Of a stretch of DNA of 64,000 bases, positions 2,664 to 63,025 are shown piece by piece. Source of the stretch: Dendrobates tinctorius (Eukaryota). The stretch is from assembly GCF_039654945.1 (NCBI RefSeq), contig NW_027361817.1:10912001-10976000 (forward strand). The letters are read 5' to 3'. The translations under genes were made by a program, and so were the position numbers. Position 1 is the first letter of the stretch. Each line of letters opens with the position of its first letter. The notes under the pieces are model-generated. The model was given only the letters and a program-made list of their open reading frames with translations. It searched no databases and was not told the DNA's origin.

Positions 2664-4124
2664 AAGACCAAAAATTTGGACACACCTTCTCATTCAAAGA
2701 GTTTTCTTTATTTTCAAGACTATTAAAATTGTAGATTCACTCTGAAGGCATCAAAACTATGAATTAACACATGTGGAATTATATAATTAACAAAAAAGTG
2801 TGAAACAACTGAAAATATGTCTTATATTCTAGGTTCTTCAAAGTAGCCACCTTTTGCTTTGATTACTGCTTTGCACACTCTTGGCATTCTCTTGATGGGC
2901 TTCAAGAGGTAGTCACTGGAAATGGTCTTCCAACAGTCTTGAAGGAGTTCCCAGAGATGCTTAGCACTCGTTGGCCCTTTTGCCTTCACTCTGCGGTCCA
3001 TTTCACTCCAGACCAACTCGATTGGGTTCAGGTCTGGTGACTATGGAGGCCAGGTCATCTAGCGTAGCACCCAATCACCCAATCACTCTCCTTCTTGGTC
3101 AAATAGCCCTTACACAGCCTGGAGGTGTGTTTGGGGTCATTGTCCTTTTGAAAAATAAATGATGGTCTAACTAAATGCAAACCGGATGGAATAGCATGCC
3201 GCTGCAAGATGCTGTGGTAGCCATGCTGGTTCAGCATGCCTTCAATTTTGAATAAATCCCCAACAGTGTCACCAGCAAAGCCCCCCCACACCATCACACC
3301 TCCTCCATGCTTCACGGTGGGAACCAGGCATGTAGAGTCCATCCGTTCACCTTTTCTGCGTCGCAAAAAGACACGGTGTTTGGAACCAAAGATCTCAAAT
3401 TTGGACTCATCAGACCAAAGCACAGATTTCCACTGGTCTAATGCCCATTCCGTGTGTTATTTAGCCCAAACAAGTCTCTTCTGCTTGTTGCCTGTCCTTA
3501 GCAGTGGTTTCCTAGCAGCTATTTTACCATGAAGGCCTGCTGCACAAAGTCTCCTCTTAACAGTTTTTGTAGAGACGTGTCTGCTGCTAGAACTCTGTGT
3601 GGCATTGACTTGGTCTCTAATCTGAGCTGCTGTTAACCTGCGATTTCTGAGGCTGGTGACTCAGATGAACTTATCCTCCGCAGCAGAGGTGACTCTTAGT
3701 CTTCCTTTCCTGGGGCGGTCCTCATGTGAGCCAGTTTCTTTGTAGCAGTTGATGGTTTTTGCCACCACACTTGGGGACACTTTCAAAGTTTGCAACCCCA
3801 TTTATAAGGAAAGAAATCCCACTTATTAAACCTGACAGGGCACATCTGTGAAGAGAAAACCATTTCCGGTGACTACCTCTTGAAGCTCATCAAGAGAATG
3901 CCAAGAGTGTGCAAAGCAGTAATCAAAGCAAAAGGTGGCTACTTTGAAGAACCTAGAATATAAGACATATTTTCAGTTGTTTCACACTTTTTTGTTAATT
4001 ATTTAATTCCACGTGTTAATTCACAGTTTTGATGCCTTCAGAGTGAATCTACAATTTTCATATTCATGAAAATAAAGAAAACTCTTTGAATGAGAAGGTG
4101 TGTCCAAACTTTTGGTCTGTACTG
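2659..4124 (-). mobile_element. Tc1-like DD38E (Intruder-type) element, internally deleted and decayed
   Basis: TIRs of about 265 bp (2659-2925 / 3860-4124) that include the ORF 3' end; WSDESKF; removing an 8-bp duplication restores DNDPKH...SPDLNPIE with 38 residues between D and E. Confidence 0.8.
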
Positions 4125-8126: not shown

Positions 8127-9712
8127 CAGTGGTTACAGAAAGTATGCAGACCCCTTTAAATTTTTCACTCTTTGTTTCATTGCAGCCATTTGGTAAATTC
8201 AAAAAAGTTCATTTTTTTTTTCATTAATGTACACTCTGCACCCCATCTTGACTGAAAAAAATGTAGAAATTTTTGCAAATTTATTAAAAAAGAAATACTG
8301 AAATATCACATGGTCATAAGTATTCACACCCTTTGCTCAGTATTGAGTAGAAGCCCCCTTTTGAGCTAGTACAGACATGACTCTTCTTGGGAATGATGCA
8401 ACAAGTTTTTCACACCTGGATTGGGGGATCCTCTGCCATTCTTCCTTGCAGATCCTCTCCAGCTCCATCAGGTTGGATGGTGAACGTTGGTGGACATTCA
8501 TTTTCAGGTCTCTCCAGAGATGCTCAATTGGGTTTAAGTCAGGGCTCTGGCTGGGCCAGTCAAGAATGGTCACAGAGTTGTTCTGAAGCCACTCCTTTGT
8601 TATTTAAGCTGTGTGCTTAGGGTCATTGTCTTGTTGGAAGGTGAACCTTTGACGAAGTCTGAGGTCCAGAGCACTCTGGAAGAGGTTTTCATCCAGGATA
8701 TCTCTATTCTTGGCCGCATTTATGTTTTCTTTAATTGCAACCAGTCATCCTGTCTCTGCAGCTGAAAACCCCCCATAGCATGATACTGCCACCACCATGT
8801 TTCACTGTTGGGATTGTATTGGACAGGTGATGAGCAGTGCCTGGTTTTCTCCACACATACTACTTAGAATTATCACCAAAAAGTTCTATCTTCGTCTCAT
8901 CAGACCAGAGAATATTATTTCTCATGGTCTCGGAGTCCTTCATGTGTTTTTTTTTAGCAAACTCTATGCAGGCTTTCACATGTCTGGCACTGAGGAGAGG
9001 CTTCCGTCTGGCCACTCTACCTTAAAGGCCAGACTGGTGGAGGGCTGCAATGATAGTTGACTTTGGGGAACTTTCTCCCATCTCCCTACTGCATCTGTGG
9101 AGCTCAGCCACAGTGATCTTGGGGTTTTTTCTTTACCTCTCTCTCTCCAAGACTCTTCTCCCATGATTGCTCAGTTTAGCTGGATGGCCAGGACTAGGAA
9201 GACTTTTGGTGGTCCCAATCTTCTTCCATTTAAGGATTATGGAGGCCACTGTGCTCTTAGGAACATTGAGTACTGCAGAAACTCTTTTGCAACCTTGGCC
9301 AGATCTGTGCCTTGCCACAATTCTGTCTCTGAACTCCTTGGCCAGTTCCTTTGACTTCATGATTTTCATGTGGTCTGACATGCACTGTGAGCTGTGAGAT
9401 CTTAAATACACAGGTGTGTGCCTTTACAAATCAAGTCCTATCAGTTTAATTAAACATAGCTGGAATCCTATGAAGGAGTAGAACCATCTCAAGGAGGATC
9501 ACAAGGAAATGGACAGCATGTGACTTAAATATGAGTGTCTTTTTTAATAAATTTGCAAACATTTATACATTCCTGTTTTTTTTTCAGTCAAGATGGGGCA
9601 CAGAGTGTAGATTAATGAGAAAAAAAATGAAATTTTTTGAATTTACCAACTGGTTGCAGTGAAATAAAGAATGAAAAATTTAAAGAGGTCTGAATACTTT
9701 CCATACCCACAG
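8127..9712 (-). mobile_element. Decayed Tc1 element with long (about 200 bp) TIRs
   Basis: TA|CAGTGG... and ...CCCACAG|TA; ORF fragments MKSKELAKEFRDRIV... and [15 protein letters not shown]...KGASTQY. Confidence 0.9.
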
Positions 9713-18603: not shown

Positions 18604-20806
18604 CAGTCATGCCAAAACTGTCGGCACCCTTGATATTGTTCCAGAAAATTGTTGCAATTGCACATATTTTGTTAAATACATGTTTATTTCCTTTGCATGT
18701 ATTGTAACAACACAAATAAAAAGAAAAAAAGGCACATTGTACATCCTTTCACACAAAACCTCATAAATGAGCCAGACAAAATTGTTGGTAAATGCACACA
18801 AAATTGTTGGCACCCTCAACTTAATATTTGGTTGTACCCCTTTTGGAATAAATAACTGCAATCAATCGCTTCCTATAACTATCAACAAGCTTCTTACACC
18901 TCTCAACTGTAATTTTGGACCACTCTTCTTTTACAAACGGCTCCAGGTGTAACATATTTGAAGGCTGTCTTCTCCCAACAGCAATTTTAAAGAGAAGCTT
19001 GTCACCCTTTTCTTTGCCTATCAGCTGCCGGCATTGACATCAGGGGCTTAGATAACTACAGCATTCTGTAATGCTGTAGATAAGCCCCCGATGTAACCTG
19101 AAAGATAAGAAAAACACATTAGATTATACTCACCGGAGGGGGCGGTCCGGTCTGATGGGTGTGGCAGTCCGGTCCGATGCCTCCCATCTACATACAATGC
19201 CATTCTCTTCTTTCCTTCCTGTCGTGGCTTCGGCGCAGGCGCACTGCTCTGCCCTGTTGAGGGCAGAGCAGAATACTGCAGTGGACAGGCGCCAGACCTC
19301 TCCCGACGCCTGCACACTGCAGGACTCTGCTCTGCCCTCAACAGGGCAGAGCAGTATGCCTGCGCCGGAGCCAGGACAGGAAGGAAAGAAGAGGATGGCA
19401 TCGCTAGAAGATGGGAGGCACCAGACAGTGACACCCATCGGACCGGATCGCCCCCTCCGGTAAGTATAATCTAATGTGTTTTTCTTATCTTTCAGGTTAC
19501 ATCGGGGATTTATCTACAGCATTACAGAATGCTGTAGATAAGCACCTGATGTCAATGCCGGCAGCTGATAGTCAAAAAAAAGGGTGACAGATTCCCTTTA
19601 AGATCTCGCTACAGGTATTCAATGAGATTTAGAAACAGACTCATGGCTGACCAGTTCAGAAGTCTCTAGAGCTTTGTTTTCATCAATTTCTGGGAGCTTC
19701 TTGAAGTATGTTTGGGATCTTTGTCTAACTGGAAGACCAATGACCTAGGACTCAAACCCAGCTTTCTGACACTGGGCACTACATTGCGACCTAAAATCCT
19801 TTGGTAATCTTCAGATTTCATCATGCCTTGCACACAGTCAAAGCACACAGTGGAGGAGGCACCAAAACATCTTTGAATCTCCATTATATTTGACTGAAGG
19901 TCTTGTGTTCTATTCTTCCTCATCCTGTTTTCGGTAAACAGTAGAATGATGTGGTATACCAAACAACTCTATCTTGGTCTCATCTGTCCACAAGATGCTT
20001 TCCAGGAAGGATTTTGACTTATATAAATTTTGGCAAACTGCATTCTAGCTTTCTTTATGTTTCTATGTCAGTAGTGGGGTCCTCCTGGGTCTCCTGCCAT
20101 AGCTTTTCATTTCATTCAAATGTAGAAAGTTTGTGCTGACTCTGATGCACCCTGAGCCTAAAGGACAGCTTGAATTTGTTTGTAATTTGATTTGGGCTGC
20201 TATCCACCATCCAAATTATTTTGCCATGCAACCTTTCATCAATTTTTCCTAACCATCCACGTCCATGGGGATTAGCTACAATGCCATTGTTTTTAAACTT
20301 CTTTGATTATGTTGCGCATCATGGACAAAGGAACATCAAGATCTCTGGAGATGGACTTGTAAGATAGAGATTGTTGATATTTTTCAAACTTTTAGTCCTC
20401 AAGTCTTCAGTTCTCTTATCCTCTTTCTGTTCTCCATGCTTAGTGTGGCAAACACAAACAAACGATGCAAAGACTGAGCCAACTTCTCCCTTTTTTTTAT
20501 CTGGTTTCAGGTGAGATTTTCATATTGCCCACACCTGTTACTTGCCAAACGTGAGTTTGAATGAGCATCACATGCTTGAAACAAAGTTGGTTACCCACAA
20601 TTTTGTCCGGCCCTTTTTAGGGGGGGTTTGTGTTAAATTTTGTTCAATTTGCCTTTTTTTCTCTGTTTTTTTTTGTGCTGTTCAAATATACACAAAAGAA
20701 ATAAACATGTATATAACACAACATATTTAATTGCAATAATTTTCTGGGAGAAATACTTTATTTTCTGGAGCAATTTCAAGGGTGCCAACACTTTCAGCCA
20801 TGACTG
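18604..20806 (-). mobile_element. Decayed Tc1 element
   Basis: TA|CAGTCATG... and ...CATGACTG|TA TIRs; MKSEDYQRIL...LDKDPKHTS remnant. Confidence 0.85.
18991..19597. mobile_element. Palindromic T2/Kolobok-type MITE nested in Tc1
   Basis: TTAA TSD on both sides; AG(A/G)GAA...GTCACCC termini; near-perfect 600-bp fold-back. Confidence 0.85.
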
Positions 20807-28743: not shown

Positions 28744-30024
28744 ATCATAGAATCGTCGAGTTGGAAGGGACCTCCTGGGCCATCTGGTCCAACCCCCTGC
28801 TCAAAGCAGGATTCGCTAAATCATCCCAGTCAGATGTCTGTCCAGCCTCTGTTTGAAGACCTCCATTAAAGGAGAACTCACCACTTCTCGTGGCAGCCTG
28901 TTCCACTCATTGATCACTCTAACTGTCAAAAAGTTTTTTCTAATATCTAATCTGTGTCTCTTCCCATTCAGTTTCATCCCATTGCTTCTAGTCTTTCCTT
29001 GTGCAAATGAGAATAAAGTTGATCCTTCTACAATGTGACAGCCCTTTAGATATTTGTAGACAGCTATTAAGTCTCCTCTCAGTCTTCTCTTTTGCAAACT
29101 AAACATTCCCAAATCCTGCAACCTTTCCGCATAAGACAGGGTTTGCAGACCGGTCACCATTCTGGTCGCTCTTTTCTGAACTTGCTCCAGTTTGTTGATG
29201 TCTTTTTTAAAATGTGGTGCCCAAAACTGGACACAATATTCCAGATGAGGTCTGGCCAAAGAGGAGTAGAGGGAAATAATGACTTCACGTGATCTAGACT
29301 GTATGCTTCTGTTAATACATCCTAGAATTGCATTTGCCTTTTTTGCTGCTGCATCACACTGTTGACTCATATTCAGTCTGTGATCTATTAGTATACCCAA
29401 GTCTTTTTCACATGTGCTGTCACTTAGCCCTATTCCTCCCATTCTATATATGCTTTTTTCATTTTTATTGCCCAGATGTAGTACTTTGCATTTCTCCCTG
29501 TTAAAAACCATTCTGTTAGTTGCTGCCCACTTCTCCAGTTTATTTAAATCTTTTTGAATCCTCTCTCTCTCTTCTCTAGTATTAGCTATCCCTCCTAGCT
29601 TTGTGTCATCAGCAAATTTAATCAGTTTACCCTCAATTCCTTCATCTAAATCGTTGATAAAGATGTTGAACAATACAGGGCCCAGGACAGAGCCCTGTGG
29701 TACCCCACTTGAGACATTCTTCCAACTGGATGTGCAGCCATTTACGACCACTCTTTGGGTCCGATCACTAAGCCAGTTATGAATCCACCTAACAGTTGCC
29801 TTGTCCATTCCATACTTAGTCATTTTTTCAATAAGGATTGTATGAGAGACTTTGTCAAATGCTTTGCTGAAGTCAAGATATACTATATCTACAGCATTTC
29901 CTTGATCCACCCAATCAGTGATACCGTCATAGAAGGAAATTAAGTTAGTCTGACATGACTTATTAGTTAGAAACCCATGCTGACTCTGTTTAATCACTTC
30001 ATTCTTATCCAGGTATTGACATAC
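28744..30024 (-). mobile_element. 5'-truncated CR1 LINE with uninterrupted RT ORF
   Basis: QHGF..KSC, YLDFSKAFDKV, SGVPQGSVLGP, KFADDTKL, RPHLEYCVQFW; 3' UTR ending in a GATTCTAT-type tail. Confidence 0.95.
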
Positions 30025-30097
30025 ATTAAGGGTAATGGTATATGCCCTTCTATTCTGATCAGTGAAGGACTGACTGCTGAAACCCCCACCAAGGATC

Positions 30098-33000
30098 CCA
30101 CCATGGTTACTTACCGGTAGCTGGTTTTTCCGGAACCCATGACAGCACACCTGAGAGAGGGATCCGCCCCGCCAGGACAGGAACCTACTGAAATATAAGG
30201 CGCGGCACCTCTCCCCCGCTTCAGTCAGTTACAGATCATTGAGAGGACTTCCCAGTTAGTTACATGTTTATCCAACACCACATCACACAAATACATCCTA
30301 CTAACGTGCACACCCATATGGTGAAAAGGGGGGGGAATATACGGGTGCTGTCATGGGTTCTGGAAAAACCGGCTACCGGTAAGTAACCATGGTGGTTTTC
30401 CCTTCACCCATGACAGAACACCTGAGACTTCGAAACACCTTAGGGAGGGACCACCGCTTGCAGCACCCTTCTACCAAAGGTTAAGTCAGCAGAGGAGGAT
30501 AGATATAATCTATAGTGCTTAAAGAAGGTTGATGGTGTGGCCCAGGTAGCGGCCTTACAGATTTGCTCAATTGATACCTCTGCCTCTTCATCCCAGGAGG
30601 TCGCCATGGCTCTAGTGAAATGAGCCTTAATGCCGTCAGGAATCGGAACACCACTAGCTGAGTAGGCTACACTAATGGCTTCCCTAATCTATCTGGCAAT
30701 AGTCCCTTTTGATACTCCATAGCCCTTTCTGGCACCCTGGAAGGCTACAAATAGGGACTGGGACCTCCTCCACTGGCTAGTCACTGATATATATTCTAAC
30801 AGGGCCCTTTGAACATCCAGTTTGTGGAATTTCTCCTCCCCTGGGTTTTTTGGAGTCTCACAGAAATCTGATACCACTTTAGGCAGATAGGCGGGGTCTG
30901 TCTTTAGGACGACCCTGTTCTGGTACACCTGGGTATAAGGTGGATTCACTAAGAGGGCCTGCAAGTCACTTACTCTACGGGCCGATGTAAGGGCCACTAA
31001 AATAATGGTCTTTAGGGTAAGATATTTTACCGGCTGTTGTTGAATTGGTTCAAATGGCTCTTCCGTAAGGGCTTCTAACACCAGGTTTAAATCCCACGGG
31101 GCTATTCTTGGCATTGGAATCGGTCTGTACCTATGGCAGGATTTAATGAATCTAGCTTCCCATCTGTTTGCCGCTATGTTGCAGCTATATAGCGCACCCA
31201 GTGCAGATACCTGAACTTTAAGGGTATTTACTGCTAGACCTAGCTGTAATCCTGCCTGTAAGATTTCCAAGATGGCCTTAATCGGGGGCTTTTGGTCTAA
31301 CGGCTTCCCCAGGAACTGTAGAAACTTATTCCATGTTCTACCATATATGTTAGTTGTCACCGGCTTCCTACTTTTCAACAGCGTAGCCACCAACCCCGGA
31401 GAAAAACATCTATTCCTTAAAAGTGACCTTTCAAATTCCATGCCGTCAGATGGAATCCCTTGACTTGTGTGTGGAATATTGGACCCTGAGCTAGCATGTC
31501 TGGGATCTCTGGTAGTACCCATGGACCGAGAGGGACATCATTTGCAGTAGCGAAAACCAGGGCCTTTTCGGCCAGAACGGGGCTATTAAGATCACTCTGG
31601 CGTGATCTTCCCTTATTTTCCTCACAACTGTTGGGATCAGAGCTACTGGAGGAAATGCGTAACCAATTTGAAATTCCACGGAATTTGCAACGCGTCCACC
31701 GCCCATGGATTTTGTTTTGGGTTTAATGAACAAAACCTCTCTAACTGTCTGTTGCTTTTGTTGGCAAAGAGGTCTACTACCGGTTCTCCCCAGAGTTGTA
31801 CTATCTTCTAGATCACTAACTGATCTAGGGTCCATTCTCCTTGCCTTAGTATATTGCAGCTCAGCAAGTCAGCTTCTACATTTTCTACCCCTCTTATATG
31901 TAGTGCCATCAGGGAGAGTAGATGTCACTCTGCTCTGTGAAAAATCTTGTTGGCCGCGTTCATTAAGGAGTGTGACCTTGTTCCCCCCTGGTGATTGATA
32001 TACGCCACTGTCACTTTGTTGTCCGACATGATCTGGACATTGTGGCCTTTTAGACGGGGAATAAAGATTTTTAAGGCTTTGTTTACTGCCCGTAATTCTC
32101 TTATGTTGGAGGATGCGTTTTTCTCTTGAGGTCCCCAGGGTCCCTGGGCCGCCTGTCCCCTTAGGTGCGCCCCCCACCCCGAGGAACTTGCATCTGTCAG
32201 GATTATGTCGGACACTGGTCTGTGCCATAACATTCCTGACATCAGGTTTGTCCTGTCTAACCACCATCTGAGAGAGTTTTTGACCTTTAAGGAAAGCTCC
32301 AGCCTTCCTTCCAAACGCCCTATTAGCGATTTCTGTGCTGATAGAATTTCTGCCTGAAGTTGATGGGTATGAAATTGTGCCCACCTGAGCGCTGGAATAC
32401 ATGCTGTCAGGGTGCCTAGTAAGGACATTACGCCTCTCAGGGTCGTGTGAGGTTGGTCTAGGGCCGCCAAAGTCAAATTCCTCACCTTTTCCTTCTTGAC
32501 CTCTGGTAACAGACAAGTGTGTTGCTCTGAGTCCAGGATGAACCCTACAAAAATATGTCTCTTTAGGGGTTGTAGTTTTGATTTTTCGATGTTTACCATC
32601 CACCGGCGTTTCTGTAGGGTATTTGTTACCCTTTCTATCTGCTCTGTGCAGTGGTGTTCTGAGTTGCCCACTATTAGAAAATTGTCCAAATAGGGTATCA
32701 TAATTGTGTTGTGGATTCGGAGGAAGGCTGTCATCTCCGCTACGACTTTCGTAAACACTCTCGGGGCTATGGATATGCCGAATGGAAGGGCCCTGAATTG
32801 GAAATGCCTGAGATTGCCCTGGATGTAGAGAGCTACTCTTAAGTATCTTTGACAATCTGGGTGGATTGGGATGTGATAATAGGCATCATTTAGATCGACT
32901 ACGGCCAAAAAACAATTGTAGTGTAGTAGTTTTATGGCTGAAGTTACCGACTCCATTTTGAAGGTCTGGTTTTCTATCCACTGATTGAGGCCTCTGAGGT

Positions 33001-43882: not shown

Positions 43883-46800
43883 TGTCATGATCTCAGTGTG
43901 GGTTTGACTCGCACACGTGGGGTTAATGTCTGGAACCAGTGCTGATGACTGGCATTTCTGGGGTTAAAGGTTGTGATCCCGATGCAGGCTTACCTGCACA
44001 CCTGGGGCTATGATTGTGGCCTCTCCCTGGTTCTGGGGGAGGCTTCTTATAGCCTCAGGACGCTCCCATCCCTGTCAGTTATACTTTCGCCCTTGGCATT
44101 GTGTGGTGACCCCTGAGTGTGTTTGTGCTGTGTTCTGGTTACTTGATTCTCTGTGTATGACTCGGTCTGTTCTCTGGATGTCGCTTTGGATTCTGCCTGG
44201 TACCTTATATGTCTGTTTGGTTTAGATCTCTGCTTGGCCCTGATTATCCGCTCTGTCTCATCCCTGGTACTGTACTGTGATCCTGTGTATGACCTTTGGC
44301 TTTGTCTGACCTCCCGTCTGTTTATCCCTCCTGTGCTGTTGTGACCTCCGTTTTGCCTGACTCTGAGTTGTTGTATGGTGTCCTGTCATATCTGAAAGCA
44401 GGACGCTAAGCCACGCCCCCTTGCAGTCACATGACCATAGGTCCTGTGCAAGCTTGTTCATTTTCAGTGTCCGCAGGTCCCATGCCTCTTTACTTTCCAG
44501 CGCTGACTGGACCCTGACACTAATAGTTGGAGCACGCCTGGTCACCTCTGCTGCCCTGCTCCCCAGGTAACTCTTAGCACTGCTTCTGTACTCAGGAAAC
44601 GTGCACTGGCTCTATGAGCAAGTGTAGTACGGTGTCTCTGACATTATAACTGACCGTTTCAGTTTTTTTTGTTTTTTTTCTGAAGAAAAAAAAAAAAGTG
44701 TGTGTTATCCTCATGGATCCCATACAAGCCTTGTCTGATCAGGTCAAGCACCTAACCCAAATGTTCCATAAGCTCAATGTGGAACAACGCACGATGGCCC
44801 AGACCCAGCAACAGTTGGTGGTTACTGTGCAGGGGGCTGTCAATGCAGGGGCTTCTGGTTCTGGGGGTAGGGATGTGTCATTAGCGTCCCCCGAATCTCC
44901 GGTCAAATTACCAGACCTTTTCTCAGGGGATAAAAAGGAGTTCAGGTCTTTCAGAGAAGGATGCAAGCTTTTTTTTTCTCTAAGGCCCCGCTCCTCCGGG
45001 GATGAGTTCCAGAGGGTGGGGGTCATTATTTCCCTACTTCGGGGGGGCTCCGCAAGCATGGGCTTTCTCTCTGTCTTCCTCTGCTCCTGAACGTATGTCA
45101 GTGAACGCATTCTTTGAGGCCCTCGGGCACATTTATGATGAACCTGACCGAGTGCGATTGGCAGAGGACATTTTGATGAGTGTCTGTCAGGGGAAACACT
45201 CAGCTGAGTGATTTTGTTCTGAGTTCTGCCGCTGGGCGGCAGAGGTCTCTTGGAGCGACGCCGCACTCCGAGGACTCTTTCGCAGAGGCTTGTCCGAGCG
45301 GCTGCAGGATGCCTTGGCGTTACATCCCCCACCTAACTCTCTCGAGGACGCCATGACCCAGGCCGTCCGGATGGACCGCAGGCTGCGGGCCAGAGGGGTG
45401 ATGAAGGTGGATACTCCATTATTCCCCAGTGGAGAAGAGACTGCCCCTGAGCCCATGGATGTAGGCACCCTCTCCCTGAAGGATACGGAGAGGAAACGCC
45501 GGAAGGACAAGCAGTTATGTTTTTACTGCGGTAAAACAGGGCATTGGAAAAGGGAGTGCCCGAATTGCCCGTCTTCAAACCCGGTCGGCGGGAAACGACT
45601 AGGTCTGGGTAGTCAACGGGGAGGCTGCTCAGACCCTCAGGTACCATTTTCCTCATTTTCTAAAGTAGTACTGCCTGTGGAACTGTTTGTGGATGGTAGT
45701 TCTTTTTCCTCTACAGCCTTCATGGACTGCGGATCATCTATTAATCTTATGGACTCCCAATTGGTCACACACTGCAAGATAGGGACAGTTATGCTCAAGG
45801 TTCCGATCAAGGTGATGGCCATTGACTCATCGCCCCTCACTAAGGAGGGAATTCGCTTTATGTCTGATGTGTTTTCGCTCAGCGTGGGCGCTACTCATGT
45901 GGAAAACATAAGTTGTTTTGTGCTGGACAATCTACCTGCAGGGTTGGTGTTGGGCATGCCCTGGTTACAACACCATAACCCAGTTATTAACTGGAAAACG
46001 GGGGAGATTGTACAATGGGGGTTTAATGATTTTGAGTTATGTGATAAATCTGCACTGCTGGTTGAACCTGTTAAAACTGTGTCTGTATCATCTGTCGAGC
46101 TGGAAGGTATTCCGGAATGCCTGAAGGACTTCGAAGATGTATTCTCCGAAAGCGAGGCCGAGACGTTACCGCCACATAGACCCTTTGACTGCGCTATTGA
46201 GCTGGTCCCGGGGGCTAAATTACCCAAAGCCCGTCTGTTTAATTTGTCCGGTCCTGAGCGCTTGGCTATGAAGGAGTACATTACAGAAAGTCTGCGCAAA
46301 GGACACATACATCCTTCAGTCTCACCTGTGGCAGCAGGTTTCTTTTTTGTAAAGAAAAAAGATGGCGGGTTACGTCCCTGTCTCGACTTCCGGGAGCTTA
46401 ATCAAATTACTGTACGGAATACGTACCCCTTCCGTTGATTCCCGATTTATGTAACCAACTATCAGGGGCAAAGTGGTTTTCTAAACTGGACCTTCGGGGG
46501 GCATATAATTTGATAAGGGTCCGAGAGGGGGATGAATGGAAAACCGCGTTCCTCACGACCGAGGGAGTATTTGAAAATTTAGTCATGCCGTTTGGTCTTA
46601 CCAACGCCCCTGCCATATTTCAGAATTTCATCAACGTGGTATTCTCGGATCTCATTGGTCATTTTGTCGTTATCTACTTAGATGATATTTTGATATATTC
46701 CCCCGACAAGTATTCTCATTTGGAACATGTACGAACTGTGCTCAAAAGGCTGAGAGAAAATGATTTATATGCCAAATTGGAGAAATGTGTATTCTGTGTA

Positions 46801-49503
46801 CAAGAGTTGTCCTTTTTGGGGTTAATTGTATCTGGTGAGGGTTTTCGCATGGACCCCAAGAAGGTGCAGGCCATTGCGGATTGGGTGCAACCCCGAGATC
46901 TTAAGGGTCTTCAGCGCTTCTTGGGGTTCGCCAATTATTACCGCAAATTTATCCGGAGGTTTTCTCAAGTGGTCAAACCTCTCACGGATCTAACATGCAA
47001 AGATGCGGATGTGAGAAATTGGTCCTTGCTCGCAAAAGAGGCCTTTGCGACGCTGAAAAAATGTTTTATGTCTGCTCCTGTGTTAGTGCAGCCAGATCCG
47101 TCCAAACCATTCGTCGTGGAAGTGGACGCCTCGGAGGTGGGGGTGGGGGCGGTGTTGTCCCAAGGGCCTGCCACTCTAACCAACCTCAGGCCATGTGCTT
47201 TCTTTTCCAAGAAGTTCTCTACTGCGGAAAGAAATTACGACGTAGACAATAGAGAGCTTCTTGCGGTCAAATTGGCGTTTGAAGAATGGAGGCACTTTTT
47301 GGAGGGGGCCAGTCACCCGGTTACGGTGATCACGGATCACAAAAATTTGTCGTACATTGAGTCTGCTAAAAGACTAACGCCCAGACAAGCCCGTTGGTCA
47401 CTTTTTTTTCCCCGTTTGTCCCAGAGCAACTTCGCCTGAAACTCTTGCAGGAGTTCCATGAATCCAAGCTGAGTGCTCACCCTGGTATTTCAGCCACACG
47501 TCTGGCGGTGGCTAGGATCTTTTGGTGGCCTACCCTTGGTTCGGACATAAAAAAATTCATTGCTGGTTGTGGGGTCTGCGCTCGTTCTAAAAGCTCTCAT
47601 AGCCGGCCGGCAGGGGAGCGGATACCCTTGGCAGTGCCCGAAAGGCCATGGACTCACTTATCCATGGATTTTGTTACCAATATCCCTCCATCTAAGGGTA
47701 ATACAGTGGTATGGGTAGTGGTGGACAGGTTTTCTAAGCAGGCTCATTTCGTACCCCTGTCCGCACTACCGTCAGCTGAGACGTTGTCCAGGTTGTTTGT
47801 GCAGCATGTGATCCGGTTGCATGGGGTACCCCTGAATGTGGTGTCTGATCGTGGTGTGCAGTTTGTGGCTAAGATTTGGCGTGCTTTCTGTAAAAAATTA
47901 GGTATGTCTCTGTCCTTTTCGTCTGCATACCATCCTGAGAGCAATGGGCAGACGGAGCGCACTAACCAGTCCCTGGAACAGATCCTCAGGTGTCTAACCT
48001 CTGCTAGACAGAGTGACTGGTGCGATGCACTGCCGTTGGCTGAATTTGCCTTCAATAGTCGGGTGAGTCAATCCACTGGTAGGTCCCCTTTCTTGATTAA
48101 CTATGGGTTTAGTCCTCATTTTGGTGAGTTTTCTCGTCTGGATTCGGGGTGCCCCGGGGCTGAGGACTCTGTTCAGCGGTTAAAAGATACATGGGCAGAA
48201 GTCCAGCGGCGTATATCCAGGTCTCAATGCAGGTATAAGTTTTTCGCGGACAGGAAACGAACACCTGGTCCCACGTTTCAGGTTGGAGAGAAAGTTTGGC
48301 TCTCCACGCGAAACATTAAGTTAAAGATTCCGTCAGCCAAGTTAGGACCCAAATTCATTGGCCCGTACAAGATTGTGGAAAAAACCAATCCAGTGGCGTA
48401 TAGGCTGTGCCTTCCACCCTCTTTCAAGATCCCTAACGTCTTCCACAAATCTCTACTGAAACCTTTTGAAGCAGCCCAGGGAGACTCCAAGTCTGCTGCT
48501 TCTCCTGTTTTGGTCGAGGGGCAGGTGGAGTATGAGGTTGGTCATATCGTAGATTCCAGGTTGGTACGGCGGTCGGTACAGTACCTGGTTCATTGGAAGG
48601 GGTATGGACCGGAGGACAGGTCCTGGATACCGGCCCGGTTGATGCATGCTGATCGCCTGGTACGGGTTTTCCATGCTAAGTACCCGGGCAAGCCTGGGGG
48701 TCCAGAGGCCCCCGTTGAGAGGGGGGTACTGTCATGATCTCAGTGCGGGTTTGACTCGCACACGTGGGGTTAATGTCTGGAACCAGTGCTGATGACTGGC
48801 ATTTCTGGGGTTAAAGGTTGTGATCCCGATGCAGGCTTACCTGCACACCTGGGGCTATGATTGTGGCCTCTCCCTGGTTCTGGGGGAGGCTTCTTATAGC
48901 CTCAGGACGCTCCCATCCCTGTCAGTTATACTTTCGCCCAGGGCATTGTGTGGTGACCCCTGAGTGTGTTTGTACCGTGTTCTGGTTACTTGATTCTCTG
49001 TGTATGACTCGGTCTGTTCTCTGGATGTCGCTTTGGATTCTGCCTGGTACCTTATATGTCTGTTTGGTTTAGATCTCTGCTTGGCCCTGATTATCCGCTC
49101 TGTCTCATCCCTGGTACTGTACTGTGATCCTGTGTATGACCTTTGGCTGTGTCTGACCTCCCGTCTGTTTATCCCTCCTGTGCCTCGTTTGCCCGTGCTG
49201 TTGTGACCTCTGTTTTGCCTGACTGAGTTGTTGTATGATGTCCTGTCATATCTGAAAGCAGGACGCTAAGCCACGCCCCCTTGCAGCCACATGACCATAG
49301 GTCCTGTGCAAGCTTGTTCATTTTCAGTGTCCGCAGGTCCCGTGCCTCTTTACTTTCCAGCGCTGACTGGACCCTGACACTAATAGTTGGAGCACGCCTG
49401 GTCACCTCTGCTGCCCTGCTCCCCAGGTAACTCTTAACACTGCTTCTGTACTCAGGACACGCGCACTGGCTCTATGAGCAAGTGTAGTGCGGTGTCTCTG
49501 ACA
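43883..49503 (+). mobile_element. Near full-length Ty3/Gypsy chromovirus (Tf1/sushi group)
   Basis: LTRs 43883-44643 and 48730-49503 (TG...CA), TSD AAACC, PPT GAGAGGGGGG before the 3' LTR; gag with CCHC, protease (MDCGSS), RT (YLDD), RNase H, integrase (GPY) and C-terminal chromodomain; frameshifts plus a deletion near 47412. Confidence 0.97.
44713..48737 (+). pseudogene. Disrupted gag-pol of the Gypsy element
   Basis: ORF pieces 44698-45090, 45002-45211, 45290-46438, 46435-47439, 47394-48737 in the order gag-PR-RT-RH-IN-chromo. Confidence 0.93.
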
Positions 49504-52862: not shown

Positions 52863-55489
52863 GATGTGCAGTGGACATGATTTTGTGGCACTCATTGATA
52901 TAGGATTACAGTTTCTGCAGAGCCCCATCTGAATGGAGCATATGACAAACATGCGCACCTCCTCTCCATTCCTTGTCTATGGGACTGCTGTAGAAAGCCA
53001 AGTACATGGCTTGACTATTTGTGAGATTCTATTAGACAATGAATGGAGCAGTGGTTTACATGCATGACTTCCACCCCATTCAGATGGGACTCTGCAGTTG
53101 TTCCAGCTTTGCCAATCCTGACACTTCATGTTTACAAACGTAATGTAATGGCACGTCAGATCCATGATGTTACACCATTTCACCAAAGGTGGAAGTCGTA
53201 TCATACACAACTTACATAGTTACACAGGTCCATCAAGTTCAACCTTTCTCCACCAGTTATGCATTCTCTAGCACTAGATTACCCACAATGACATTTGCTG
53301 CAAAAAAACAATTAGCCTTTTTTTAAAACCTGTTATAGTATCTTCCATTATTACCTCTTGAAGTAGGTCATTTTACAGTCTGACAGCTCTAACTGTAAAG
53401 AACCCTTTCCTATTTAGCTACCAGAATCACCTTCCACCACATGCAATGAATTCCCCCCAGTGTTTTGTAGTTCTCTGGAAGGTATAAATTGTGTTCCAGT
53501 GCTTCATATTGATGACACGTGTACTTGTAAATATAAATGAGATCTCCCCGGAGGAGTCTATCTTCTAACCTCTCATTACAGGAGTGGCTTCCAACCCATG
53601 TAATATTCTAATTGCTCACCTTTGAACTGACTCTAATTTGCAAATATTGTTTTTAAGCTGGAGTCACATTAGAGTAGAGCATCTGATGCGAGAGCTCAAG
53701 CTCTGCTGTGAGCGTAAGCAGAGTTTCAGTGCTCTGTGCAAGAGAGAATCGCAGCATAGGTGTGGAGAAGACGGAGAAAGTAATTTCTCCATCTCCTCCA
53801 TTGCAGGCATCTGAGGTAATTGGACTGCCCTAGGATGACATCCGAGTACAGTCCGATGTTTCATATGCACCCATAGACTTGTATGGGTGAGCCTGATTTG
53901 ATTCTCAGATGCACCCACAGCATACTGCAATTGTTTTCTCATGCCGAATCAACATGAGAAGAAAGTAATCGCAGATCTGAACTGCCCCATAGAATAACAT
54001 TTGCCCGAGTGCTAGGCCATGTTTAATCACACAGCACTCGGCCGTGTTATACACTCGTGTGAGCAAACCCTTAAAGTGTGGATACTAAAACTGGATGCCA
54101 TATTCTAGATGTGGCTTTATAAGTCACTAGCTGAAGAGCCCAGCGTTGCCTGGGCATAGTAACCAACTGTGGTTAGTTATAACAAATTATAATGATTATA
54201 TTGCACATAAAAACCGTGCATCTAATCCTATCCTGTGTGATACTGTCTGCTGAGCCGTGTCTCTAATCCTATTCTGTGTGATACTGTCTGCTTACCCGTG
54301 TATCTAATCCTATCCTGTGTGATACTGTGTGCTGAGCTGCGTATCTAATCCTATCCTGTGTGATACTGACTAATGAGCTGTGTATCTAATCCAACTGTGG
54401 TTAGTTATAACAAATTATAATGATTATATTGCACATAAAAACCGTGCATCTAATCCTATCCTGTGTGATACTGCTTGCTGAGCCATGTGTCTAATCCTCT
54501 CCTGTGTGATACTGACTGGTGAGCTGTGTATCTAATCCTATCCTGTGTGATACTGACTGCTGAGCCGTGTATCTAATCCTATCCTGTGTGATACTGTGTG
54601 CTGAGCTGTGTATCTAATCCTATCCTGTGTGATACTGGGCTCCCCCTGCAGTCTGTGTCAGAGGGTGGTCTGTGTTGGCACGGTAATAAATTGTGTTATT
54701 TCCAGCTTTACAGAAGGACGATAACACCATAGAAATTATAAGAATAATAGGCCTCAGTTACCACAACTGTCTACAAAGAAAACTGTTGCTGATATCAACC
54801 AATCACAGCTCATTTTTCATCTTTTAAACAGCTCTGGGACAGCGTGGCGAGTTTTGAGTGGCGACTTTTGTGTTTCGACTTTTATGTAGCGAGGTTGGTG
54901 TATGTGTGGTGAAATGTGTGCTGAGGGTGGTATATGTGTTGAAGCACGTGGTAGTGTGTGGCGCATTTTGTGTGTGTGTGTTCATATCCCCATGTGTGGT
55001 GAGTATCCCATGTCAGGGCCCCACCTTAGCAACTGTACGGTATATACTCTTTGGCTCCATCGCTCTCAGTCCCCCTTGTTCACATCTGGCAGCTATCAAT
55101 TTGCCTCCAACACTTTTCCTTTCACTTTTTCCCCATTATGTAGATAGGGGCAAAATTGTTTGGTGAATTGGAACGTGCGGGGTTAAAATTTCACCTCACA
55201 ACATAGCCTATGGCGCTCTCGGAGTCCAGATGTGTGACTGTGCAAAATTTTGTGGCTGTAGCTATGACGGTGCAGATGTCAATACATACACTTTTTCCCC
55301 ATTATGTAGATAGGGGCAAAATTGTTTGGTGAATTGGAACACGAGGGGTTAAAATTTTGCCTCACAACATAGCCTATGACGCTCTCGGGGTCCAGACGTG
55401 TGACTGTGCCAAATTTTGTGGCTGTAGCTGCGACGGTGCGGATGCCAATCCCGGACATACATACATACACACACACATTGAGCTTTATA

Positions 55490-56710
55490 CACTCACTGGC
55501 CACTTTATTAGGTACACCATGCTAGTAACGGGTTGGACCCCCTTTTGCCTTCAGAACTGCCTCAATTCTTCGTGGCAGAGATTCAACAAGGTGCTGGAAG
55601 CATTCCTCAGAGATTTTGGACCATATTGACATGATGGCATCACACAGTTGGCGCAGATTTGTCGGCTGCACATCCCTGATGCGAATCTCCCGTTCCACCA
55701 CATCCCAAAGATGCTCTATTGGATTGAGATCTGGTGACTGAGGAGGCCATTTGAGTACAGTGAACTCATTGTCATGTTCAAGAAACCAATCTGAGATGAT
55801 TCGAGCTTTATGACATGGCGCATTATCCTGCTGAAAGTAGCCATCAGATGTTGGGTACATTGTGGTCATAAAGGGATGGACATGGTCAGCAACAATACTC
55901 AGGTAGGCTGTGGCGTTGCAACGATGCTCAATTGGTACCAAGGGGCCCAAAGAGTGCCAAGAAAAAATTCCCCACACCATGACACCACCACCACCAGCCT
56001 GAACCGTTGATACAAGGCAGGATGGATCCATGCTTTCATGTTGTTTACGCCAAATTCTGACCCTACCATCCGAATGTCGCAGCAGAAATCGAGACTCATC
56101 AGACCAGGCAACGTTTTTCCAATCTTCTACTGTCCAATTTCGATGAGCTTGTGCAAATTGTAGCCTCAGTTTCCTGTTCTTAGCTGAGAGGAGTGGTACC
56201 CGGTGTGGTCTTCTGCTGCTGTAGCCCATCTGCCTCAAAGTTCGACGCACTGTGCATTCAGAGATGCTCTTCTGCCTACCTTGGTTGTAACGGGTGGCAA
56301 TTTGAGTCACTGTTGCCTTTCTATCAGCTCGAACCAGTCTGCCCATTCTCCTCTGACCTCTGGCATCAACAAGGCATTTCCGGCCACAGAACTGCCGCTC
56401 ACTGGATTTTTTTTCTTTTTCGGACCATTCTCTGTAAACCCTAGAGATGGTTGTGCGTGAAAATCCCAGTAGATCAGCAGTTTCTGAAATACTCAGACCA
56501 GCCCTTCTGGCACCAACAATCATGCCACGTTCAAAGGCACTCAAATCACCTTTCTTCCCCATACTGATGCTCGGTTTGAACTGCAGGAGATTGTCTTGAC
56601 CATGTCTACATGCCTAAATGCACTGAGTTGCCGCCATGTGATTGGCTGATTAGAAATTAAGTCTTAACACACAGTTGGACAGGTGTACCTAATAAAGTGG
56701 CCAGTGAGTG
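55490..56710 (-). mobile_element. Intact Tc1/mariner DD36E (Incomer-type) transposon, 1221 bp
   Basis: Perfect 29-bp TIRs CACTCACTGGCCACTTTATTAGGTACACC, TA TSD, single ORF. Confidence 0.93.
55522..56562 (-). CDS. DD36E transposase, 346 aa, uninterrupted
   Basis: ATG to stop; paired [18 protein letters not shown]...[11 protein letters not shown] with 36 residues between D and E. Confidence 0.93.
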
Positions 56711-57271
56711 TATATTAGATTTCTGGAGGGGTAACAACACATTGGGATCACTTATTTTTATCTCTCTTTTTATACACCCTAAAATCTTGTTAGCTTTTGC
56801 GGCTGCTTCCTGACATTGAGTACTGCTGCTCAGCTTACTTGTAACTAGAATACCAAGTCCTTCTCCTGCTCTGTAGTCCAGAGTATACTCCTATTTATTG
56901 TATATTTGATTACTAAGGGCTGTGATGCATCACTCTACATTTATCAACATTAAACCTCAGATGCCAAGTGTTTGTCCATTAAGCCATCTTACCAAATCGT
57001 TCGGTAGTATTATATTGTTAAGATCAGTTTTTGTTATCTCATAAAGTTTTCTCTCATCAGTAAAGACTTACTTGAAGTCCTGTGCACAAGGTCATTAATA
57101 AAGAGAATAAAAATAATTGGGCTTGTGGTTCTCACCACTGATTTAATCCATTTACAGAATGTACCAATCACAACGACTCTGTTTCCTGTCCTTAACTAGT
57201 TATTTTACCCAACTGCATATAATGTAGTTTCTCCTAGTCCCTGCTTCTGGAGCTTCAGTACAAAGCTGTTA

Positions 57272-59925
57272 CAGTGGCTTGGAAAAGTATTCACCCCCTT
57301 GGCTTTTTATCTATTTTGTTACATTACAACCTGTGTGTTAAAAATTTTTGTAATATGATTTGTGTGTGATGCATCAGCACTAAATAGTCTAAGTTGGTGA
57401 AGTGAAGTAAGAAAAATATAAGCATGAATTAAATTTATGGGATCAAATAACAAAAAATTGGCATGTGTATATGTATTCACCTCTTTTGCAATGAAGCCCT
57501 AAACATTTCTGGTGCAAGCAATTACCTTCATAAGTTACATGCTTAGTGAGAGGAAGTTGCCATATGTGCAATCTAAGTGTCACATGGTCAGTCAGATATA
57601 CACTTTACCTTTTCTGAGAGGTCACAGGGGCTGCAACACTATTAAGAGGCATCACTAACCAAACACCATGACGACCAAGGAGATCTCCAAACAAGTTAGG
57701 GATAAAGTTGTTGAGACGTATAAGTCAGAATTGGGTTATAAAAACAATATCCCAATCTCTGATGATCCTCTTGAGCACAATCAAATCCATTATCAGCAAA
57801 TGGAAAGAACATGGTACCACAACAAAACTCAAAATTTGCCAAGAGAGGGCCGCCCACCAAAACTCTCAGCCCGGGGAAAGAAGGACCTTAATCAGAGAGA
57901 CAGCACAAAGACCAAAGGTAGCCTAAAGGAGCTGCAGAGTTCCCAAGCAGAGACTGGAGTATTTGTCCATACGACCACAATAAGCCGTACACTACATAGA
58001 GGTAGCCTTTATGGAAAAGTGGGCAGAAAAAAAGCCCTTACTTACACATTAAAACTGTATGGTTCGTTTTGAGTTTTCCAAAAGACATGTGGGAGAATCC
58101 CCAAATGTATGGAGGAAAGTGCTGTAGCCAGATGAGACCAAAGTTGAACTTTTTGGATACCAAGGTAAACGCCATATCTGGCGCCAAGACAACACAGCAC
58201 ATCACCGCAAGAACATAAACTACACAGTGAAACATGGTGGTGGCAGCATCATGTTGTCGAGATGCTTTTCAGCAGCAGGTACTGGGAGAATGGTTGGAGG
58301 AAGATGGACAGTGCGACATACAGGGATATATTTGAGCAAAACCTGTTTCAGTCTGTCAGCAATTTGTAACTGGGATAACCATCCAACAAGACAATGACCC
58401 AAAGCACACTGCTAAAGCAGTGGCAGTGTCTTAAGGGAAAACATGTGAAGTGGCCTAGCCAAAGCCCAGATCTTAATCCAATGGAGACTCTGTGATCAGA
58501 CTTGAAGATTTTTGTTCACCAGAGGAAACCATCTCACCTGAAGGAGCTGGAGCAGTTTAACTTGAGGAATGTGCAAAAATTTCATTGGCAAGATGTGGAA
58601 AGCTCACAGAGACTTATCTGGGTTGCCCTCCCAGGGCTGTGGGGTACTCGGTACCGGGCCGGTCTCTCAGAGGGGAATGTCACAGCAGCGGTGACCCGGT
58701 CCGTGGCCCTGGGCAACCATGTAAAAGGGAATTAAGTGATGAAATAAAGTTTATGAGTGAATGATTCGTGACGCCACCTGTGGTGTTCGGCAATGAAGAT
58801 CTTAAGCCGACGCTGCGGACAGATCCTCTGGGACAGATGGTGGGGTGCAGCAATGATGGTGTAGCCCTCCACAGGCAGGGCTGTAGTCCCAGGGCAGAGT
58901 AGATGAAGAGGGTAGGTGTGGAGGAAGAGGGTGTAGTGTTTGGCACAGAGCTGTAGCAGTGCTGGAGAGTTTGCAGGAAGAAGGCAAGGACACAACAAGG
59001 TGCAGTTCCTTTAACTTTACTTTGCTTGGCAAATGCAGTCCAGAGTCCAGATTACAGATGGCACAGGAGCTGGTTAGCCTGGAAGCAACTTAGGAATCTC
59101 TCTAAGCAGATGGGTTATGCAGTCTCCTTCCTAGCGCTTAGTTTTAGGTACTTGCAGTACTGTGTTACACTGAAGTTCCACTTGCTTATTCTCTTTAGAA
59201 CTCCCTCGTATGGCAGACAGCTGTAGCCTTCCTCTTCTGGCTCACACGTCGCTGTTGTGCCTCCGAGTTTTATGTGGGAATAGAGCATTTACAGCTTCCT
59301 ATTCCTCCGGTTTCTGTTGCAGGACCATCAGTGTCCATACAGCCTTGGAGACCGGGCTCCAGATCATGAGCTATAGCTGGGAATGAGCCTGAACTCTCTG
59401 CTCAATCTCCCAGGCCTTCTCCTCACGTCCACACACGTTGCCCTCCTCACACAAACTCTTAATTCTCCCTTCCTGGCCCCCAGAGAGTAGCTCCTCCCCC
59501 AGTTTTGGGTTCAGAGCTCCCTCTGCTGGCCTGGAGTGGGAGCTGTGTTGTGTGCTGTGGTTAACTGCCAGAGAGATCCTTTATTGCATCCAAGCATGAC
59601 ATCATACTCCCTAGGAGGAAGGCAATGCCACTGTGGCGACCATACTCCTGGGGACGCCACATTTCCAAAGGGACTTGCAGCTGTAATTGCCATCAAAGGA
59701 GGCTCTACAAACTACTGACTTTAGGGGGGGTGACTAGTTATGCACACTGATGTTTTCACTTATGGTATTTTGTTGTTTGCTTCATACTAAAAAAAATGTT
59801 CACAGTAGTAGGCATGTTCTTTAGATGAACTGATGCAAACTCAAAAAAACAGAGACATTTCAGGTTGTGAGGTAGCAAAACATGGAAAATTCTGGGGGGG
59901 TGTTGAATACTTTTGCAAGCCACTG
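57272..59925 (+). mobile_element. Decayed Tc1 element
   Basis: TA|CAGTGGCTTG...CAAGCCACTG|TA; MTTKEISKQVRDKVV remnant, many frameshifts. Confidence 0.88.
58619..59661. mobile_element. Solo LTR inserted in the Tc1 3' coding region
   Basis: TG...GACGCCACA termini; Tc1 sequence resumes afterwards; imperfect TSD TATC/TTTC. Confidence 0.65.

Positions 59926-61394: not shown

Positions 61395-63025
<1,631 letters not shown>

Follow-up and report, generated by a model that had tools for sequence, protein, structure and literature searches.

The window, that is, the whole 64-kb stretch of DNA that was analysed, contains a Tc1/mariner element of 1221 bp at positions 55490-56710, which was delimited by direct reading of the sequence and by a repeat finder. 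With a probability of roughly 0.88, we regard this element as a structurally complete and very young copy of the Incomer (DD36E) family, belonging to a frog-specific subfamily that has recently been amplified to roughly thousands of genomic copies.

The repeat finder returned a 33-nt perfect inverted repeat (55486-55518 and 56682-56714), which is made up of a 29-nt terminal inverted repeat (TIR), CACTCACTGGCCACTTTATTAGGTACACC, and a TATA on either side. Because TATA stands on both sides, the boundary of the element is formally ambiguous by 2 nt; the boundary adopted here yields CACTC...GAGTG ends and a TA duplication, as in published Incomers. When up to three mismatches are allowed, the 29-nt TIR is found at exactly two sites in the 64-kb window, with zero expected from 100 shuffles. 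The features of the element are as follows.

55488-55489, no strand: TA target-site duplication, left, by direct reading; TA is present at both ends, as in all published Incomers
55490-55518, no strand: TIR, 3' end in the transposase sense, a perfect match to the other arm
55522-56562, minus strand: transposase open reading frame (ORF), uninterrupted, 346 aa and a TAG stop
55714-55716, minus strand: codon of catalytic E283 (NPIEH), by alignment to Sleeping Beauty
55825-55827, minus strand: codon of catalytic D246 (FQQDN), by alignment to Sleeping Beauty
56098-56100, minus strand: codon of catalytic D155 (WSDES), aligned to the Sleeping Beauty WSDET motif
56563-56681, minus strand: 5' UTR between TIR and ATG, carrying the subfamily-specific CTGTGTGTTAAG
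56682-56710, no strand: TIR, 5' end in the transposase sense, a perfect inverted repeat
56711-56712, no strand: TA target-site duplication, right, by direct reading

The sense (minus) strand carries a single AATAAA, at 55504-55509 within the 3' TIR, 12 nt past the stop codon and 14 nt ahead of the end of the element; it probably acts as the polyadenylation signal at which the transposase mRNA would end. The length of 1221 bp, the perfect 29-bp TIRs and the TA duplication, which an initial annotation of this DNA had reported, were borne out by the sequence reading, the repeat finder and the shuffles, and the unbroken 346-aa ORF, in which 36 residues separate the second D from the E, was likewise confirmed by the ORF itself and by alignments.

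According to short-read contigs, both immediate flanks of the element are high-copy repeats. On the left, positions 55120-55485 hold two tandem units of about 170 bp of such a repeat, followed by a (CATA)n(CA)n microsatellite tail, and the Incomer starts a few bases past this tail. The repeat is abundant in organism A and absent, at 90% likeness, from organism C, a second frog species. Further to the left, 54300-54640 is a minisatellite with units of about 45 bp (GTATCTAATCCTATCCTGTGTGATACTG...GCTGAGCTGT); it is extremely abundant and common to both frog species, with a contig depth of about 4 million in each, which is far above that of the transposon.

The predicted transposase matches three Pfam models, all above their curated cut-offs: HTH_23 (aa 8-48), HTH_Tnp_Tc3_2 (aa 71-142) and DDE_3 (aa 151-295). 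Its catalytic residues are spaced by 90 residues (D155 to D246) and 36 residues (D246 to E283). In a search of solved structures, the sole match was the catalytic domain of Sleeping Beauty SB100X (5cr4; aa 117-346, E=1.6e-46), and in this alignment Sleeping Beauty has a 2-residue gap between D and E. The 36-residue spacing is present in 22 of 22 aligned full-length relatives, from 97% down to 60% identity. A structure predicted from an alignment of 28 sequences has a mean pLDDT of 53, with the catalytic domain below 50; the model is good for the DNA-binding domain alone and was used just for helix boundaries. It places six helices in the DNA-binding region (pLDDT 76-87); in Incomer this N-terminal region is bipartite, with two helix-turn-helix units, six helices, a GRPR-like linker and a nuclear localisation signal, and the linker of the window protein is CGRK. 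An exact-sequence look-up of the transposase returned no record.

The published description of Incomer (DD36E/IC) gives an element length of about 1.2 kb, a transposase of some 346 aa, TIRs of 22-32 bp and a TA duplication (Sang 2019, PMC6875036). Its hosts include 132 fishes, four frogs, four bats, hagfish and some arthropods (PMC6875036). The four frogs are Rhinella marina, Nanorana parkeri, Rana catesbeiana and Xenopus tropicalis, three of which have intact copies (1194-1225 bp, 346 aa), and the supplement has no entry for Oophaga or any other dendrobatid (PMC6875036). In that supplement, the entry for ends and duplications reads 'CACTC/CACTC, TA/TA' (PMC6875036). The element in the window agrees with this description in its length of 1221 bp, its one ORF of 346 aa, its DD36E spacing, its 29-bp CACTC TIRs and its TA duplication.

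A word-based protein search gave 3331 relatives, the best of which are 346-aa proteins encoded on contigs of about 1.2 kb together with fish proteins. Identity peaks at 97.4%, with P0121, and lies at 93-95% for several fish proteins, including those of the Incomer hosts Cyprinodon and Fundulus; transposases of 93-97% identity come from Cyprinodon, Fundulus, Xyrichtys, Pimephales and metagenome contigs. The 90%-identity clusters of the two best matches include proteins of Cyprinodon variegatus, Fundulus heteroclitus, Xyrichtys novacula, Pimephales promelas, Pampus argenteus and Sinocyclocheilus. A maximum-likelihood tree groups the window protein with P0121 as its sister and nests the pair in a shallow clade of proteins from fishes of several orders. 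The tree was built without DD34E sequences, and separation from that group comes from the spacing of 36 and the limited similarity to Sleeping Beauty in the alignment. Taken together, structure and relatives support membership of the element in the Incomer (DD36E) family.

It is conceivable in principle that a DD34E Tc1 element, or a domesticated host gene, merely mimics Incomer. Incomer is the sister group of DD34E, and the catalytic domain of Sleeping Beauty aligns strongly with that of the window protein. Tc1 proper (DD34E), however, has 34 residues between the second D and the E, and here there are 36, a spacing common to the whole clade; since all relatives share it and Sleeping Beauty shows a 2-residue gap, it is characteristic of the family, not a private insertion within a DD34E protein. 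As for a domesticated gene, intact TIRs, a TA duplication and a huge copy number are incompatible with a single-copy gene. Both candidates, the domesticated gene and the DD34E element with a private insertion, were rejected on copy abundance, the gap in the Sleeping Beauty alignment and the clade-wide spacing, and we give them a negligible probability. The DD36E type proposed by the initial annotation thus stands: length, ORF size, spacing, TIRs and TA duplication all match the type, the protein is about 97% identical to that of R. marina as printed in the supplement, and it nests among transposases of Incomer-host fishes. A private insertion inside DD34E, which the same annotation had named as one contrary outcome, did not appear, the spacing being 36 in all relatives down to 60% identity.

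The search also brought up public records in which fish Incomer transposases bear names such as 'E3 ubiquitin-protein ligase HECTD4', 'MAFGb', 'triokinase/FMN cyclase' and 'mitochondrial ribosomal protein L58'. Misnamed or misfiled Incomer records are among P0122-P0127, P0137, P0138, P0025 and P0107. In addition, a partial Incomer copy, 83% identical, is filed as a Vibrio parahaemolyticus transposase. The misnamed fish records are likely annotation transfer errors, and the Vibrio record is likely contamination of a bacterial assembly with fish DNA.

The best-known transposons of related build are Sleeping Beauty, Frog Prince and Passport, which belong to DD34E. They share with the window element the architecture of a paired-like DNA-binding region and a DDE domain, the targeting of TA and the cut-and-paste mechanism; they differ in that the second D and the E are separated by 34 residues instead of 36. 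Long repeats of IR/DR type and a length of about 1.6 kb characterise Sleeping Beauty and Frog Prince, both of which are reconstructed elements, not natural ones. The activity of all three is proven, whereas no published activity test of Incomer came up in the literature searched.

Among named Incomers, the closest comparison is with TMIC01Rrhma of R. marina (cluster B; PMC6875036), whose entry in the supplement gives 1225 bp with both TAs, equal to 1221 bp without them, as here. By the same entry, the type element and the window copy agree in having 346 aa, a DD36E triad, perfect 29-bp CACTC TIRs and a TA duplication, and they have in common the amphibian-type residues A9, A89 and V145. The two proteins are about 97% identical; a comparison by eye with the sequence in the supplement gave 10 differences in 346 aa, and in the direction from window copy to R. 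marina these are E11K, I15V, K52T, C103R, K173Q, R254G, W259C, R296M, S315T and L329M. Relative to the R. marina protein printed there, V15I, T52K, Q173K, G254R, M296R, T315S and M329L are shared across the family in the present frog, and R103C is private to the window copy. For R. marina, 5475 copies are reported (PMC6875036), so that both hosts have copies on the order of thousands.

For the comparison of DNA, we used the fish-type contigs L001 and L002 (Logan/ENA) and ten P0121-encoding contigs from metagenomes (L003-L012), whose flanks all differ. At TIR position 8, R. marina (as printed in the supplement) and all twelve contigs have C (CACTCACCGG), whereas T stands at both ends of the window copy; a 4-nt block also sets the 5' UTRs apart, with CTGCTCGTTAAC in R. 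marina, fish-type and metagenome copies and CTGTGTGTTAAG in the window copy. These TIR and 5' UTR differences are not variant in contigs of organism A or organism C, and the majorities of both organisms therefore match the window copy.

The ten metagenome contigs (ENA, JGI metagenomes) deserve a remark of their own. They carry the same 1221-bp amphibian-type Incomer (A9, A89, V145) at different TA-rich insertion sites, and, since these sites all differ, the contigs represent DNA of a host animal with many insertions of a sister subfamily.

Runs of organism A contain up to 94% of the element's 31-mers. In X42, a large DNA run of this organism, 75% of a 3.2-kb stretch including the flanks is present, and its contigs match the unique right flank (56825-57299 and 57566-57682) with zero differences at a depth of about 7; given this identity, X42 comes from the same species, possibly from the same individual. 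Over the element itself, the summed contig depth in X42 is 1.0e5 to 3.4e5, compared with about 7 for unique DNA, a depth that is not to be taken as a true copy number. The ratio of 10^4 to 10^5 indicates roughly thousands to tens of thousands of copies with a likeness of at least 90%.

The same-species comparison was made in three organism-A runs (X42, X40 and X25), in which just three positions have at least 10% of the depth differing from the window copy: 55959, 56202 and 56256. The longest listed pieces of X25 cover about 1,050 of the 1,221 bp with 2 differences in all. Apparently a single change in 1221 bp, at 56256, is private to the window copy, and it is a CpG transition. Because the copy is nearly identical to the same-species family majority, its insertion is very recent and belongs to a subfamily that was amplified not long ago. 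If neutral change in vertebrates is taken to proceed at about 1e-9 per site per year, we infer an age in the region of a million years or below, subject to a large error. A very recent insertion of a recently active and probably horizontally acquired family, as the initial annotation had put it, is thus well supported: instead of the divergence of several percent that it had set against this view, there are three differences from the same-species majority, one of them private.

Shortened relatives of the element were also seen. A derivative with an internal deletion of 322 bp (55850 to 56173) reaches a depth of 15,000 in X42, which points to mobilisation of non-autonomous copies in trans. In the second frog species, one contig joins TIR to TIR (55515 to 56687) and has a MITE-like look. 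Among the contigs listed, no joint skips the whole element; these are Logan contigs of 80-420 bp, and both junctions abut high-copy repeats.

The subfamily is not confined to one frog. In organism C, the depth of the element is 6e5 to 8e5, and the well-supported rows show just three differences from the window copy, two of them synonymous (55966 and 55999) and the third at 56256. For most of the flanking DNA, the unique part included, contigs of 90% likeness are absent from this organism. The element thus has a consensus identity of about 99.8% between two frogs that differ by more than 10% in the DNA around it, which fits a recent acquisition by both or a transfer between them.

The element also closely resembles copies from outside the frogs. 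It aligns with L001-L012 without gaps over all 1221 bp at 97.2-98.0% DNA identity, and the ORF gives a dS of 0.039-0.052 and a dN of 0.011-0.023; this check of identity and dS against fish-type copies, proposed by the initial annotation, gave values that fit the published horizontal transfer. The dN/dS is 0.22-0.26 against P0121-type copies and about 0.5 against L001 and L002, and the low ratio shows that the transposase was under selection during the divergence of the lineages. In the 180 non-coding bases, there are 6-7 differences from L001-L012. On these alignments, such non-coding identity between a frog and elements of several teleost orders cannot reasonably be vertical, and the family was probably acquired horizontally. 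The describers of Incomer concluded the same from a comparison of RAG1 and Incomer distances (Sang 2019, PMC6875036).

A contrary reading would take the family as old and vertically inherited in frogs, with the likeness to fish copies due to strong conservation and the low divergence due to gene conversion or assembly polishing. Repeat copies in long-read assemblies can indeed be smoothed to a consensus, and the reference letter at 56256 is without read support in the contigs. Selection on the protein, however, cannot hold the non-coding part at about 96-97% identity over the more than 400 My since the fish-frog split. Moreover, independent short-read contigs from three samples of the species give the same sequence, the element of the second frog is nearly identical despite flanks that are not recognisably orthologous at 90% likeness, and the published family analyses also conclude horizontal transfer. 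Vertical descent with polishing is accordingly very improbable, and we retain recent amplification of a horizontally acquired family. The polarity of CpG changes adds little: relative to a metagenome-type consensus, 5 of 26 differences are CpG losses here and 0 are in the opposite direction, a mild tendency with too few changes to build on. Viral contigs, scanned with a 31-nt TIR/UTR word for a possible viral vector, gave 0 matches. The same word found three loci in metagenomes, 90-96% identical or partial, which are of no use for dating the subfamily.

A family of similar description has been reported from another poison frog. In Oophaga pumilio, the 'Mariner-4_DR-like' family comprises contigs of about 1245 bp in 46,000-73,000 copies, with a peak at about 97% identity to a fish element and expression in ova, and a horizontal transfer between fish and frog was proposed (PMC6278860). 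It agrees with the window element in a length of about 1.2 kb, a very high abundance and 97-98% identity to fish-type copies. As the two were compared by description only, equating Mariner-4_DR-like with Incomer is a lead and not a match. In Dendrobates tinctorius, Tc1-type elements make up 6.57% of the assembly (PMC11152451).

By analogy with the family, binding to the 29-bp TIRs would fall to the two helix-turn-helix (HTH) domains of the 346-aa transposase, excision of the element would be the work of its RNase-H-like DDE domain (D155, D246, E283), and reinsertion would take place at a TA dinucleotide, which would thereby be duplicated. Whether the window copy can drive this process depends on a few residues, and the three codons at which it departs from same-species copies are as follows.

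55957-55959, minus strand: codon 202; the window copy keeps Trp, and half or more of the same-species depth has GGG (Gly)
56200-56202, minus strand: codon 121; the window copy keeps Arg, and 80-98% of the same-species depth has TGG (Trp), by 56202 G>A
56254-56256, minus strand: codon 103; TGC (Cys) here, CGC (Arg) at 96-100% of the depth in four runs

In two of these codons, the window copy retains what many of its sisters have lost. All 28 homologs compared have R121 and W202, and Sleeping Beauty likewise has Trp at the position of W202. The change 55959 A>C (W202G) accounts for 54% of the depth in X42, 61% in X40 and all of it in X25; neither R121W nor W202G occurs in the second frog species. 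Most copies in the host would then descend from masters with probably impaired transposases, which would imply mobilisation in trans.

In codon 103, it is the window copy that stands apart. In the three organism-A runs, 56256 A>G makes up 100% of the depth, and in X21 about 96%. The contigs lend no support to the reference letter, which may stem from an assembly error or from a rare allele that the assembler left out. Residue 103 is the second residue of a predicted helix (102-111; pLDDT about 80), the third of the second HTH. In Tc1/mariner transposases, this helix is expected to read DNA. Of 23 full-length homologs, 20 have Arg at this position, two have Ala and one has His. Two further changes, M329L and M296R, are carried by the whole subfamily, and M329 is Met in 23 of 23 homologs. 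Each of R103C, M329L and M296R could lower activity.

The copy may therefore be young and intact in appearance without being autonomous, moving only through the transposase of others because R103C or M296R/M329L cripples its own. This would accord with the private nature of R103C at a position that is mostly Arg, with the place of residue 103 in a helix of the confidently modelled DNA-binding domain, and with the full conservation of M329 among the homologs compared; most copies of any Tc1/mariner family are inactive in any case. Position 103 is, however, not strictly constrained, since some relatives have Ala or His there and the Rana catesbeiana copy printed in the supplement has Cys; M296R and M329L are common to a subfamily that amplified massively; and the window copy has kept R121 and W202. 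We hold such non-autonomy to be a serious contender, a little short of even odds. In favour of function are the two TIRs, which are intact and equal to the family majority, and the intact ORF and catalytic triad. We infer that the family may still be active and that the window copy may be autonomous rather than merely mobilisable in trans. Graded separately from these features, activity of the exact window ORF is doubtful, and the presence of active members in the subfamily today seems evenly balanced. A wider proposal, that the subfamily is still transposing, that it reached or passed between both frogs within about the last million years, and that its ancestral-type transposase (that is, bar R103C) is naturally active, is put forward tentatively, as clearly the less probable outcome. 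If it were true, a naturally active vertebrate transposase would be at hand from a family never bench-tested; a search of the literature found no published activity test of any Incomer.

It is important to separate what is new here from what is already in print. Intact frog Incomers, their horizontal transfer and the Tc1/mariner expansions of poison frogs have been published, and the novelty suggested by the initial annotation was overstated, as was its view of the copy as unique, since the genome holds roughly thousands of copies. What we add is modest: a host lineage not listed for Incomer, and a distinct subfamily that has changes at both TIRs, that is near-identical in two frogs, and in which most sister copies are altered at invariant residues while the window copy is not. 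A family known for jumps involving fish, frogs and bats thereby gains a host lineage and an extremely abundant subfamily. The window copy also provides a concrete natural ORF and TIR pair for a first test of Incomer activity, and the R121W/W202G pattern guides the choice among natural copies to be tested. The view of how such elements work is not changed.

The remainder of the window holds further mobile DNA. A tblastn search with the transposase found six other Tc1/mariner remnants, 26-43% identical to it and all partial, four of them split between frames, in agreement with the initial annotation, which had called the other copies broken. They are located as follows.

349-1166: Tc1/mariner remnant (tblastn)
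2846-3645: Tc1/mariner remnant (tblastn)
8340-9357: Tc1/mariner remnant (tblastn)
18824-18967: Tc1/mariner remnant (tblastn)
57999-58549: Tc1/mariner remnant (tblastn)
62073-62808: Tc1/mariner remnant (tblastn)

On the plus strand, positions 45290-48737 contain three adjoining ORFs, the first with a zinc knuckle and an aspartyl protease, the second with reverse transcriptase and RNase H, and the third with an integrase and a chromodomain. This segment looks like the nearly intact interior of a Ty3/gypsy LTR retrotransposon of chromovirus type. On the minus strand, a 257-aa ORF at 33305-34078 matches the Pfam model LAP2alpha (E=2e-12) and adjoins reverse-transcriptase ORFs at 28816-32956; a host fragment that was captured or retro-copied is one conceivable source, a transposable-element protein with that fold another.
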